NCBI GenBank assembly: GCA_000320545.1
Contig: ADNK01000102.1
Location: 1 to 36,154, forward strand
From: Bigelowiella natans CCMP2755
Taxonomy: Eukaryota > Protista > Cercozoa
Reading direction: 5' to 3'
DNA: 36,154 nucleotides
Shown here: positions 9,504-17,335 of the stretch, piece by piece
Numbering within the stretch: position 1 is the first letter of the stretch
Layout: every line of letters begins with the position of its first letter
Position numbers and translations under genes: made by a program
Notes under the pieces: model-generated
What the model saw: the letters and a program-made list of their open reading frames with translations, nothing else
Database searches by the model: none
Told to the model about the DNA's origin: nothing

Positions 9504-10893
9504 ATGACGTCGTCGACATCGCTGCGCGTGTGTGTGTTTGGCTCCTCGTCGAAGCAAACTCCCGAGACTTATCTAAAAGAGTCGTACAAACTAGGCAAGC
9601 TGATCGCAAAGGTAGTTGTCAGCAACCTGAAAAGATAGTTCCTGCAGCAGGTCTGCTGGCCTCCCAGGCAGCGACGAGCACAAAACCGGGCTTCTCTAAC
9701 ACGTACTTCGGATGTTTTCCACAGGGTGGCCATGTATGTGTTACGGGAGGTGGGATATCAGGCTGTATGGGCGCGGTGAGCGACGGATGCGCAGATGCTG
9801 GAGGTCTGTAAAATCGTGGGGTTTTCAATCGATTTGAGTAGCAGTGGGTCCACGGGAATCTTGCGAGATAATGAGGGGAATATTTGCGCCCACCCTTCTT
9901 AGAGAAGAGGATTAGGAAGACGTTAACGAAAACAGAATGAAATCAGCTTATGCACTACACGTTTTTGCGCTACGAATTGAATGATATACCTCTCTTCTGA
10001 TTAAAGCCCATATTTTGTAGGCACTGCTGTAGGTGTAATCCACGAGATGTGGTGTGCTGAGGGAGAAATGGACGAGAAGCATCGTCGTCTCAGCGAACTC
10101 ATTGTAATATTCATATTGCAATTTGTCCTGCAAGCAAGTTCTTGTTGTGAGTGCTGAACGATTGACAGTCTATTTGTAGAACTTGCATCAATGCGTATAG
10201 GGCATATTGATTTTTATGCTTATGTATAATTTGCTGTGCCTTGTGTGTGTTATCTACTCCGCGTGGTCCGTTTTATCGACGTGTTGAAATTAACAGAAAG
10301 TAGGTGGTAAGAACCTCATGAGGAGAAAGGAAGCTCTCCTAGGTCACCGTACACACAATAACATTCTTCCTGAACCTTACATTAAAATGTTGATTTTTCT
10401 GAAGATATTTTGTGTCTACCCTCCCTCCCCCCCTCCACTCTCTCCTCCTTGAAACCATGCAGAGCGCGCAGACTGTTTTGTATCCCTTCCAGGGGGTGTT
10501 GGAACATTTGATGAAGTACACACACACACACACACACACACATAGAGAGAGGGAGAGAGAAAGGAATCCCCTATATGTTGTACAATATATATATATATAT
10601 ATATATATATACAACATTGTACTCAATCGCGCAACCCGCATGTAAGAATATACGCTATCAGAAAGACGGCCATTGATTTTCGTGGCGCCTACATTTGTAC
10701 TAACACCGTCCTCGTCGTCGTTGTGGGTGCTCCCCTCCCCCTCCTTTTCCTCCTCCTAATAAGCTGTGTGAGGTGGTGTGTGAGAAACAACTTGGCATGA
10801 ACCCACGGGTCTGCGTTCTTCTCAACATCGATGGCTACTATGACGGCTTTCTACAACAAGTAATCAGATTAGCACATATGACACACGCACACA

Positions 10894-10974
<81 letters not shown>

Positions 10975-11192
10975 GAGGGAGAGAGAGAGAAGGAAAGCAC
11001 GCGAAACAGTCGTTACGACACCGTGATGGTGGGTTTTCGAAACGCTCAAAAAGCTCGCATTGTTCTTCAGATGAAGCGGATGCAAAAGGACAAAATCCTG
11101 TACGTTCCAACTGAAAAGGTAGAGTCCCCTTCGACGACGATAACACCAACGATCACAAAGAGACAGCGGGAGCAATGTTGATGACAACAGCA

Positions 11193-11231
<39 letters not shown>

Positions 11232-11448
11232 CGCGCGGTGTGGTTCTCATTGTGTATACATGCTTGTTGTGTTGAACAATGTGGTCGCTCCTCTTCCAAT
11301 GATGGAAACAAGCTCATTCTCACTGCAACTACTGCCGAGGAAGCGCTCGAGTTGTGCGTCAAGCATCATGCTGAAAATCAGAATCTCAAAATTGTACTTG
11401 CACACGATGCACAGACCCTCCCCCTACAAATACACTTTCGCCCACACA

Positions 11449-11495
<47 letters not shown>

Positions 11496-12658
11496 TTACA
11501 TATATATTATATGTGTGTATAGAGAGAGATAGAGAGAGAGGGAGAGAGAGTCTCACAAGATAATATGAAAAGCCTGCATACAATGCGGTGATCCAGTGCG
11601 CAATAGAGATGTCGCCGTTATCATCGTAGTAGTTGTTATTGTCCTTGTCGGCATTGCCGTGAAATTGTCGGTGCTACTGCTGCTGCTGCTGCTGCTGCTG
11701 CTTCTTCTTCTTCTTCAGAATACGGACGAAAACATGAAAGCCGTAGAGAAGAAGAAGAAGACAGAGGAGAAGGAAAAGGAGGAGGGGCAGACAGGCGGAA
11801 ACGGCGAGAAGATCGAGATAAATGAGAAGGAAGACGTGGTAATAATAATATTGTGAGAACAAGTCATGCCGATGACCACTAGCAGCAGCAGTATCCTCCT
11901 CCTCCTCCTCCTCCTCCTCCTCCTCCTCCTAATACTACTACTTCCCTTTCTTCGCATGGTGTGTATTATTTGCGCTGGATGCAGGTAAGAGCTGCCATTG
12001 AGGCTCGTGCCCAGTCGTTGAAACTGCAGGTTGACTGTGCTTCTTGTCTTATATTATTACATTGCATATGAGTGCGTGATGATTGATGATAGCGCTCAAG
12101 CTACTCCTCGTATACGGGCAACGACGACGTGATGAGCGACAACTAATTGACCTTCTCCTTCCTCTCCTTCTTCTTCTTCCTCCTCTTCTATCTTCGGAAC
12201 GCCAGGCCTTGGACACTGCCAGCCGCCGGGCTATTCTGTTAGAAATAGCAAAGACGCTCGCGGCGAACAAAAACGAGATTCTCGAGGTAAATAGTGGCAC
12301 AACCCATGACCCGAAGACATGTAGATGCAAAGCGAGTGTGCTGCGCAGCTATGAGCACCTCAATCAGGCGCCGCCAGTTGTTGTTAATGCAGGCTTGCCG
12401 GTGGTGTTCTTTGCTGTCGTCTTTCCAGGTAAATAAGGAGGATATCAAGGCCGCCCAATCTATGAAAATGTCCAAGTCGATGCGGAAGGTACAACCTACC
12501 TGCGTGTTTGATGGTGCGGTCGCTCGAAGGGAGATAAACTCACAAATATACTCACACACAAACACGCAGAGAGGAAGGGGAAGGGGGGGGGGAGGGAGAG
12601 AGAGAGAGAGAGAAAGAGAGGGAATTCGCTGCATACGATTGTCATATTATATAAATGT

Positions 12659-12693
<35 letters not shown>

Positions 12694-14430: not shown

Positions 14431-14461
<31 letters not shown>

Positions 14462-14566
14462 ATGGTAGCGGTGATCAATTGGGGGGGGGGATGAGTGGAT
14501 AATAGCATTATGATCTCAATGTGATGGCGTGCAATTGAATTTGAATCTTTTTTAGTGCGTGTGCGT

Positions 14567-14609
<43 letters not shown>

Positions 14610-16205
14610 TATGTGTTGTTGGCATATCGGCTCACTGCGTGTATGGATTTGTGTGTTGACCACGACAATTAGGCCTTGTGAATTTCATCAAATCGCATAC
14701 CAAAATCCCTGTGCTAGGCCACGCGGTGAGTACCGAACTAAGATAGGAGGGGGTGGAGGGGGGGAGGCGAGAAAATATACTTAGATTTGAATGTGCGAAT
14801 AATGCACGCTCGGGTGAGAGCTTCTAGTCTCTTTTTTCTAATGATATCTGACAACTATGCTCATGGTTACGACGGCTATCTAAATCATCATCGTCGTCAT
14901 CATCGCTCGCTTATGAGTATATTCGTATGAATCTCTCTCTCTTTCAGGACGGTATCTGCCATATATTCTTGGATACTGATCTCGACGTTGCTATGGCTAT
15001 TCGTCTCATCATCGACGCAAAACTCAACTATGCCGCCGCCTGCAATGCGGTACTGTCTTTGGCCTTCTTTCTCCTCGTCCTCCCCCTATCACTCACCCCT
15101 TACTCTCCTCACCTATACATTCAACCTATGGCGAGCTTGTATTTATGCTATGCGTGCTTTGGAAAAGGTGGAGAACGTGCTTTTCCACGAGGGGCTCTTC
15201 GAGGATGGCAGAGCAGGGAAGATCCTTGCAGCTGTGCGAAAGGAGGGCATTCAAGTGCACGCTTCCAAGGAGGTACTACCAACCATCATTTATCAGGGGC
15301 GGGGAGAAGGAAAGAGAGGGAGGGAGAGAGAGAGAGAGAGAGAGAGAGCAGTTCCGTTGTTGTACGGGTGATCTATTGCTTGAAGCACATGCACACACAT
15401 GTAAACACACACGCATACACACACACACACACACAACCTTATCAGATCTCCCAATTGCTGGGAAAGGACACCACCTGCGCTGCGATTCCGGTAAAATGAA
15501 AATGCAAAAGTGAAAAAAACCCCAAAAAAAGTAAAATCAACAACAACAACAACGACAACAACAACAAACAAGTTCAGTGCGGGCATGCTGAAGACGGTGA
15601 CTATAGTAATAACCACGCGACGCGGTGATGGCGAAAGGCTTTATATTATTAATAACAATGAGAGGAAATGGATACTTTGAACACCACGTTCCCGGTGTTT
15701 CTTCTGGCCGTTGTCGTCGTCGTCATCGTTGTTGTTGTTGTTGTTATTGTTGTTGCATGCTTCTCATTCGGCTCCCAATCATAAACAAGGCGGACACCGG
15801 GTTCTCCACGGAATACGGCGATAATAGAATGAGCATCCACGTGGTGAAGGTAATACTAGCGTGGTGGTTGTCGAGGAGGGGGAGGGGGGGGGAGGAGGAA
15901 GAGCAGTAGTATGCTAAGGAAACGACAACACAGCCTGTGATTCTCATACATACCTACACATAATATATATTTATTGTGTGTGTGTGTGTGTGTGTGTTTG
16001 TGTGGCTATTATTATCTTCGCTGCCGTCATATTGATGCTGCCCATCATCATCATCACTATGATCATCATCATCATCATCATGATGTACAGAACGTCTCTG
16101 CGGCAATGAGGCACATCAACGAGTTCGGCAGCGGTCACACAGATTGCATCGTCACCAACAACAAAGACAACGGTGCGTTTTCACACGCTCAAACACTCAC
16201 ACACA

Positions 16206-16259
<54 letters not shown>

Positions 16260-17138
16260 CAGCCACACACGACGTGAAGACAGTATGCTTTACATGCTCT
16301 AATATTACACGGCATGGAATCATGGGATATTATCTATATTTTGGAATGCGTGCCCCCTCCCCCTCCTCCTCCTTATGTTGTTATTTTTTCTTCTTCTTCT
16401 TCTTCTTCTTCTTCTTCTTCTTCTTGTTGTCCTGCAGTGGAAGCATTCCTGACCGGTGTGGCGAGCGCGTGCGTCTTTCACAACGCCTCTACTCGTTTCG
16501 CCGACGGGTCCGTACGCATATGTCGTAGAAATATTAGTTGCAGAAGAAGGAGGAGGAGGAATTGAACGAAGGAGAAGGACAATGGGGTTATTTTCATTAG
16601 AAGAATCGTCGCTGGTTCTCGTTGCGAACATGCTTTCCAACGCAAAGCTGTTCCTCAAGTTGTGAATTTCCCTTTTTTCTTATGGCCATATTCTCCCCCC
16701 CCCACCCTCCTCGTCGTCGGCATCGTTGGTCAGATTTCGATTCGGGCTGGGTGCGGAGGTCGGGATCAGCACCGGGAAGATTCACGCAAGAGGGCCTGTT
16801 GGAGTGAAAGGGCTGACGACGACTCAATGGACTTTAGCCAGCGGGTGTGTGTAGTTTCGAGTAGCAGTAGCTGCTAGCCGTTGTAGAGGGGGGCGGGAGC
16901 GGCAAGCGACAAAGTGTGCAGAGATGTGGCATGCGGCTGTAATTCTTTCTACCAATTGATGATACGCGAAATAACCATTCAATGCTTAAACTTCTATTCA
17001 GTGAAAAGGACGGCCACACTGTCACGGATTTCGTGGAGGGCGCATGCGAGTACCATCATCATTAGCCTCCTCTTTCTCCCCCACTCATCGTCATCATCAT
17101 CATCATCATCATCATCATTATCATTACATCCACACACA

Positions 17139-17172
<34 letters not shown>

Positions 17173-17335
17173 ATCTTTATCATCGTACAAGTTTTGACAT
17201 GACTCTTGATTCTTTCCAGCTAGCTCACTCTATGCATCTAACTTGCACTGTGGTTGGGGTGTGTGTGTTAACCCGGAATTACTTTCAATCGCAACGCTCA
17301 GGTATACTCACAAGAAGCTCGAATTGAAAAGCTGA
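9504..17335 (+). CDS. LOG-family nucleotide phosphoribohydrolase fused to gamma-glutamyl phosphate reductase (ProA / GPR domain of P5CS), 30 exons
   Basis: LOG part (exons 9504-11393): [66 protein letters not shown]-rich linker exon 11719-11838. GPR part from 11985: [72 protein letters not shown] (catalytic Cys), [49 protein letters not shown]. Ends [10 protein letters not shown] with TGA at 17333-17335. All junctions traced are GT-AG and in phase. Confidence 0.85.
10517..17170. repeat. Dense intronic microsatellites ((CA)n, (GA)n, (TA)n, (CAT)n, (CTA)n, (CCT)n, poly-C/G)
   Basis: Visible in most introns of the LOG-ProA gene, for example 10894-10990, 11445-11495, 12660-12692, 12945-12970, 14285-14345 and 16195-16260. 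Similar tracts occur at 590-3320, 23130-24650 and 34680-35812. Confidence 0.95.

Follow-up and report, generated by a model that had tools for sequence, protein, structure and literature searches.

In the cercozoan Bigelowiella natans CCMP2755, contig ADNK01000102.1 (positions 1 to 36,154, referred to below as the window) carries on its plus strand a gene in which a phosphoribohydrolase domain of the LOG (LONELY GUY) family is joined, through a charged linker, to a gamma-glutamyl phosphate reductase (GPR), the second enzyme of proline synthesis. The coding sequence (9504-16854) is divided over 28 exons and specifies a product of 652 residues. We consider it probable, taking the statement as a whole, that this is a genuine and well-expressed nuclear gene, that its main mRNA encodes one 652-residue protein, and that this protein is cytosolic and carries two independent enzymes on a single chain.

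One spliced transcript

Sequencing runs of one organism, presumed to be RNA, were placed on the segment 9350-15349. In the runs chosen, about 0.2 of the words sampled from the 8-kb stretch are present, a value close to its exon share of about 0.25, and since 22 introns are systematically removed within the segment, the runs must be cDNA. Intron-less contigs were obtained in three studies (X1, X4 and X6) at depths of 256-299, and every joint listed for them has GT..AG borders; from the RNA run X21, 7 reads were placed on the segment. Contig 4 of X4 (1875 nt, depth 256) extends from the 5' untranslated region to exon 27 and agrees base for base with the exon model. Its early pieces include 9467-9609, 10019-10103, 10764-10859 and 11310-11393 (record positions 548-631), and its later pieces 11724-11837 (record positions 637-750), 13046-13138, 14947-15048 and 15167-15272 (record positions 1513-1618). 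Between the pieces of exon 8 and exon 9 exactly 5 letters are left, corresponding to 11719-11723, and therefore nothing is inserted at the 11393/11719 junction, which is bridged independently by contig 6 of X6. The joint on the other side of the linker exon, 11837->11984 (GT..AG), is listed in all three studies. The cumulative exon lengths of the model, counted from 9467, reproduce all listed record positions of the X4 contig, and its total of 1875 falls on the end of exon 27. As this coordinate arithmetic agrees throughout, the exons for which no separate piece is listed are also fixed.

Unspliced sequence is rare by comparison. Introns 2 and 8 are represented by contigs of depth 6-11 only, as against 256-299 for the spliced contigs, and the sole contig touching intron 8 has a depth of 11, compared with 299. 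Intron 8, the longest of the 27 (the next are 299 and 283 nt), contains (CA)n, (GA)n and (CTG)n repeats and is precisely the stretch that would be intergenic if the locus held two adjacent genes. At 11393 and 11719 the listing, which omits 8 joints and 29 loose ends, contains neither a joint nor a loose or molecule end, it being understood that contigs cannot reveal transcript ends.

A first-pass annotation of this DNA, made without knowledge of any transcript, had proposed a single spliced transcript of LOG, linker and GPR with junctions at 11393/11719 and 11838/11985, and had described the intervening DNA as intron-like. These junctions are real splice junctions (X4 contig 4, X6 contig 6 and the listed joints), contigs of three studies carry all three parts in one record, and 11394-11718 is indeed microsatellite-rich and spliced out of the transcript contigs. 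The same annotation had extended the gene to 17335, which has to be corrected, as the frame stops at 16854; the open reading frame ending at 17327 has no family support and shows a short hydrophobic stretch only.

The LOG half and the linker exon

The fusion locus is represented among public proteins by a 145-residue fragment (P0001; exons 1-6), which is 100% identical to residues 8-152 of the model and has precomputed Pfam domains PF03641 and PF18306. This fragment scores 125 bits on the LOG family model TIGR00730, for which the cut-off is 96.35. The LOG half aligns end to end with the solved LOG structures 1t35, 5zbj, 2a33 and 5its, with conservation of the GGG, RK and PGGxGTxxE motifs. The catalytic motifs are located at residues 100-101 (RK) and 115-123 (PGGVGTFDE), in register with their counterparts in 1t35 and 5zbj, and both RK and PGGxGTxxE are invariant in the alignment of the algal LOG clade described below. 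The LOG half is thus predicted to be a nucleoside-5'-monophosphate phosphoribohydrolase with intact catalytic motifs.

The flexible linker is encoded by a separate exon (exon 9) that is in phase 0 at both ends, and its 40 residues include 11 Glu and 9 Lys; no match to it was found in the family scan. Within this exon, contigs of X1 (depth 44) and X6 (depth 78) return from 11785 to 11746, with 5 letters added, corresponding to a 45-nt in-frame lengthening of the Lys/Glu-rich stretch. This variant could be an allele, a strain variant or an artefact of repeats in the assembly graph.

The sole other LOG gene detected in the genome is an intron-less open reading frame of 410 residues on another contig (C3210:31379-32611, minus strand), in which the TIGR00730 domain (residues 219-386, 98 bits) is preceded by an N-terminal extension of about 218 residues.

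The reductase half and its counterpart elsewhere in the genome

Family matches of the reductase half were made exon by exon. The GPR exons match the models TIGR01092, TIGR00407 and NF001221 collinearly, with E-values down to 1e-15, and the matched positions of the P5CS model (715 in total) follow each other in genomic order: 366-394, 395-409, 409-432, 424-452, 503-542, 599-630, 631-654 and 654-689. The putative catalytic cysteine, Cys490, lies in an AACNA motif that is aligned with the same motif in 8y2h, 1vlu and 7f5t; among the solved structures, the exon containing it is aligned with AACNA of the P5CS of Arabidopsis and Drosophila, and with GCNA of yeast Pro2. The other GPR motifs are all present, i.e. 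ESRP (residue 356), KGGKE (379), PRGS (436), NASTRF (605) and HARGP (630).

Summed over four exons, the scores against solved structures are 105-114 bits for plant P5CS, 99 for the fly enzyme, 95 for the human enzyme, 91 for yeast Pro2 and 61-68 for bacterial ProA structures, values that provide a crude ranking rather than a tree. As P5CS and Pro2 score higher than bacterial ProA, the reductase is assigned to the eukaryotic P5CS type, and it is predicted to be complete and active.

A canonical P5CS (glutamate 5-kinase plus GPR) is encoded elsewhere in the genome assembly (91.4 Mb, 3736 contigs), by a multi-exon gene that occupies about 44.2-54.05 kb of contig C2164 on the minus strand. Positions 16-66 and 393-696 of the P5CS model are matched by its exons, glutamate-kinase motifs are readable in between, and kinase motifs and GPR exons are collinear. 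The GPR of this gene is 36-95% identical to that of the fusion in local segments, and the intron positions differ. This combination of similarity and shifted introns suggests that the fusion carries an old second, kinase-less copy.

No amino-acid-kinase domain (PF00696) was matched in the window, i.e. the kinase of a P5CS was not detected there. In the whole genome, matches to PF00696, to TIGR01027 and to the kinase portion of TIGR01092 were confined to contigs C910, C866, C1107 and C2164, and exons resembling glutamate kinase were found only in the P5CS gene on C2164. The best general amino-acid-kinase match, on C910, was considered as a separate ProB and rejected, as it is a carbamate kinase. 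This carbamate kinase reading frame (about 71800-72700, minus strand; 284 bits on PRK12354, cut-off 361) is intron-less, in a genome that is otherwise intron-dense.

The domain assignments of the first-pass annotation agree well with these results. The LOG domain, called intact from its PGGVGTFDE and RK motifs, scores above the TIGR00730 cut-off and has both motifs in place; the in-frame charged exon said to join the two domains is present in transcript contigs, in phase 0 at both ends; and the eukaryotic type of the GPR is borne out by the family matches and by the ranking of exon scores over P5CS, Pro2 and ProA structures. Topologically, it was right to describe the LOG domain as occupying the place of the kinase in P5CS. 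As to the source of a kinase, for which either a separate ProB or a canonical P5CS had been considered, the latter is present on C2164 and no ProB was found.

Relatives and distribution

An exhaustive search with exon 6 against 1.84 billion protein representatives yielded, besides P0001 and one unrelated repeat protein, only four further LOG proteins or fragments (P0002, P0003, P0005 and P0006); further homologue searches were made with P0005 and with two profiles, A1 and A2. As the public fragment retrieved for the locus, P0001, covers part of the LOG half only, the fused architecture did not surface in protein searches. One relative with the same LOG-linker-GPR beginning is P0005, a metagenome protein (JGI) of 250 residues, which aligns over its whole length to residues 7-263 of the model with 54% identity. 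The alignment crosses the charged linker and continues into 24 residues of the N-terminal helix of the GPR, which are 58% identical. Judging from this alignment, at least one further organism, a fairly distant one, has the LOG-GPR fusion. With the B. natans genome and one environmental fragment as its known distribution, the fusion looks rare.

Among the matches listed, the LOG half has its closest relatives in LOG proteins of algae and protists, including those of haptophytes, cryptophytes, ochrophytes and many diatoms. A hydrophobic C-terminal tail (17-residue Kyte-Doolittle mean of at least 1.6 within the last 40 residues) is found in 130 of the 188 clade members of at least 215 residues. 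No such tail was found in the last 40 residues of the fusion, where the maximal 17-residue mean is 0.53; the GPR occupies the place of the anchor-type tail, and the low-complexity segment before it is kept. The clade as such (P0021-P0039 and P0082-P0301) is widespread, its members combining a low-complexity spacer with a hydrophobic C-terminus of the tail-anchor type, and those of diatoms have an insertion inside the LOG domain. From their sequence, the tails look like membrane anchors. No literature on algal LOG proteins with hydrophobic tails was found in our searches.

Other searches gave no link between the two families. In a metagenome scan with P0005, none of six LOG loci had a GPR downstream, and a search of the ESM Atlas with the same sequence gave ordinary LOG clusters only. 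Neither was a GPR found beside bacterial LOG genes (0 of 80 loci, 6 kb on each side), so that gene neighbourhoods provide no independent link between the LOG and GPR families. Our literature searches found nothing relevant on Bigelowiella in connection with proline or P5CS. The expectation from the sequence that the LOG-GPR architecture was undescribed agrees with the searchable literature, in which no description of it was found. We regard the fusion as a new arrangement of domains from two enzyme families that are already known, and as real, expressed and narrowly distributed.

Gene model

All 27 introns have GT..AG borders, a length of 108-325 nt (mean 200) and a microsatellite-rich sequence. 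An in-frame ATG is also present at 9414, 90 nt upstream of 9504, which would add 30 residues without a hydrophobic core. The true start codon is probably that at 9504, as the transcript contig begins at 9467 and leaves the upstream ATG outside. The stop codon is TAG (16852-16854). The features are listed in Table 1.

Table 1. Coordinates of the LOG-GPR fusion gene within the window
Feature	Position	Strand	Basis
5' untranslated region	9467..9503	+	up to the start of X4 contig 4
LOG half, exons 1-8, residues 1-198	9504..11393	+	exon model, GT..AG joints, contig pieces
Exons 1-4	9504-9611, 9725-9803, 10021-10103, 10297-10342	+	exon model
Exons 5-8	10463-10515, 10764-10859, 11071-11118, 11313-11393	+	exon model
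Intron 8, 325 nt	11394..11718	+	excised exactly in X4 contig 4 and X6 contig 6
Linker exon 9, 120 nt, residues 199-238	11719..11838	+	transcript contigs, exon model
GPR half, exons 10-28, residues 239-652	11985..16854	+	exons 10-27 transcript contig; exon 28 homology
Exons 10-14	11985-12029, 12206-12286, 12429-12488, 12772-12814, 13048-13139	+	
Exons 15-19	13323-13365, 13474-13518, 13660-13724, 13859-13888, 14128-14178	+	
Exons 20-24	14375-14426, 14673-14725, 14948-15049, 15168-15272, 15446-15490	+	
Exons 25-28	15790-15849, 16091-16172, 16438-16507, 16734-16854 (TAG)	+	

Origin, function and alternative explanations

We propose that the fusion arose when a kinase-less reductase paralogue of P5CS was joined downstream of a tail-anchored-type LOG gene. 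The reductase may have been captured by the neighbouring LOG gene by way of the symmetric phase-0 linker exon, with loss of the anchor. With the LOG fold beginning as early as residue 7, a signal or transit peptide is not predicted, and the fusion protein is most likely cytosolic and bifunctional. Its LOG half would split AMP-like nucleotides into the base and ribose 5-phosphate. Since LOG proteins of known structure form dimers or hexamers, the LOG half may oligomerise the chain, serving as an N-terminal module in the role that the kinase domain has in P5CS. The GPR half would reduce gamma-glutamyl phosphate supplied by the kinase domain of the separate P5CS. Such a supply would operate without channelling, in line with the title of a 2024 paper according to which ProB and ProA do not channel gamma-glutamyl phosphate (PMC11573504).

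Several points weigh against this explanation. The cut-off of the cytokinin-LOG equivalog model NF058542 (300 bits) is reached neither by P0001 (86 bits) nor by the full LOG domain of P0005 (105.5 bits), and therefore the substrate specificity of the LOG half is not fixed by family score. The enzymatic activity of both halves is predicted, as is the intact 72-kDa chain. Exon 28, placed by homology only (56.9 bits to the C-terminus of P5CS/GPR, E 1e-15, together with the reading frame and an acceptor of canonical type), lies outside the read-covered stretch. By coordinate arithmetic, the contigs of X1 (1733 nt) and X4 (1875 nt) both end exactly at the donor of exon 27 (16507/16508), and these ends suggest a branch in the transcripts, e.g. 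a different terminal exon or a last intron that is not spliced out; translation into intron 27 would meet a stop after about 19 codons, with loss of the conserved C-terminus of the GPR. The closest named LOG homologue (P0003, MMETSP, 213 residues, labelled 'complete') is a stand-alone protein. Finally, no protein with PF03641 and PF00171 on one chain was found among the best 120 matches listed in the searches with P0005, A1 and A2, a weak negative since the length ceilings of these searches were 437, 637 and 667 residues against an expected 640-650, and the matches of A2 were mostly diatom LOG proteins. The first-pass annotation had looked to this domain combination for relatives of the fusion, and the outcome is mixed: no full-length homologue was listed within ceilings of 437-667 residues, and one fragment with the same start, P0005, was obtained.

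Among the other explanations, the one that fares best, though we regard it as unlikely, is that the LOG half is a nucleotide-binding regulatory or sensor module that has replaced the proline-feedback-sensitive kinase, so that GPR activity follows AMP or other nucleoside monophosphates, cytokinin ribotides or ribose 5-phosphate. In other proteins, LOG-like (SLOG) domains sense ligands, and proline synthesis has ties to NADPH and the pentose-phosphate pathway. That a second organism has kept the fusion, with about 54% identity, suggests that the joined protein is under selection, and the position of the LOG half below the cytokinin-LOG cut-off points in the same direction. On the other hand, the catalytic Arg-Lys pair and the Glu of PGGxGTxxE are intact and invariant in the clade, as expected of an active enzyme, and a 40-residue low-complexity linker with a length variant argues against a tight interface between the domains; the 80 bacterial loci, none of them with LOG and GPR as neighbours, also speak against it.

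That nucleotide catabolism or sensing is coupled to proline synthesis, by direct metabolic or allosteric means, is in general terms possible but speculative; a coupling of this kind had been suggested in the first-pass annotation. In a more specific form, which we hold to be rather improbable, LOG-GPR would be a regulated unit, in which the LOG half, by sensing or consuming AMP-type nucleotides or cytokinin ribotides, controls how fast the NADPH-dependent synthesis of glutamate semialdehyde and proline proceeds, the nucleotide or energy input replacing the proline-feedback kinase module of P5CS. If such a unit exists, it would link purine and ribose-5-phosphate status directly to osmolyte synthesis in a marine alga. 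More generally, a real coupling would represent an unrecognised link from the turnover of nucleotides or cytokinin ribotides to proline synthesis, and a natural P5CS-type reductase working without its own kinase would bear on the no-channelling claim made in the title of PMC11573504. Even without coupling, the fusion gene would remain a clear case of domain replacement, and it draws attention to the widespread algal LOG clade with hydrophobic C-terminal tails, which is apparently unstudied.

It is very unlikely that the two halves channel or share a metabolite, with the GPR half acting on the aldehyde form of ribose 5-phosphate or on another acyl phosphate. A Rosetta-stone argument can be made for it, and the presence of a canonical P5CS could free the GPR of the fusion to change its function, but all motifs that define true GPRs are kept, and the exons score as GPR/P5CS and not as generic aldehyde dehydrogenase. 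Least credible of all is a locus of two adjacent genes, with a LOG gene ending near 11522, a GPR gene starting from the exon 9 ATG and the joined RNA as a minor read-through product: an in-frame ATG does occur in exon 9 (at about 11735), reading on from exon 8 does reach a stop at 11522, P0001 covers LOG exons only and contigs are blind to transcript ends, but in the three studies the only contigs of high depth are those that carry the 11393/11719 junction, intron 8 appears only in an 11-fold contig as opposed to a 299-fold one, neither side of the junction shows a listed joint or loose end, and P0005, an independent environmental sequence, has LOG, linker and GPR in one open frame.

Comparison with known systems

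The two-enzyme chain that we favour shares with P5CS (ALDH18A1; TIGR01092) the type of its GPR, for which the best solved matches are the plant, fly and human P5CS, and the arrangement of an N-terminal alpha/beta domain before the GPR on one chain. It differs in that this N-terminal domain is a LOG domain and not a glutamate 5-kinase. A 2024 survey of P5CS evolution (PMC11061531) records that the kinase domain was lost independently in some green algae. Free-standing GPRs (ProA, Pro2; TIGR00407, NF001221) have the catalytic domain, the motifs and the C-terminal end in common with the fusion, which in contrast has about 240 extra N-terminal residues (LOG plus linker). Unlike bacterial ProA, the GPR of the fusion scores nearer to the P5CS-type domains.

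The fusion of a LOG domain to another enzyme has a precedent in the IPT-LOG protein of Claviceps purpurea (PDB 5ajt, 'phosphoribohydrolase LONELY GUY'), the LOG part of which is matched with an E-value of 1.5e-10. The partner in the Claviceps protein is an enzyme of the same cytokinin pathway, whereas the LOG partner in the B. natans fusion belongs to proline synthesis, and we know of no metabolite shared by LOG and the GPR of that pathway. With LOG proteins in general (LONELY GUY, YvdD of Bacillus (1t35), the LOG protein of Corynebacterium (5its)), the fusion shares the end-to-end domain and the GGG, RK and PGGxGTxxE motifs; it is set apart by its GPR, by its score below the cytokinin-LOG cut-off and by the clade signatures VIHEMW and DGYYDG. 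The closest relatives among the matches listed are the algal and protist LOG proteins of the tail-anchored type (P0021-P0039, and P0195-P0301 from diatoms), which are 40-56% identical to the LOG half and also have the low-complexity segment; these proteins end in a hydrophobic helix with a few basic residues, whereas the fusion ends in a GPR.

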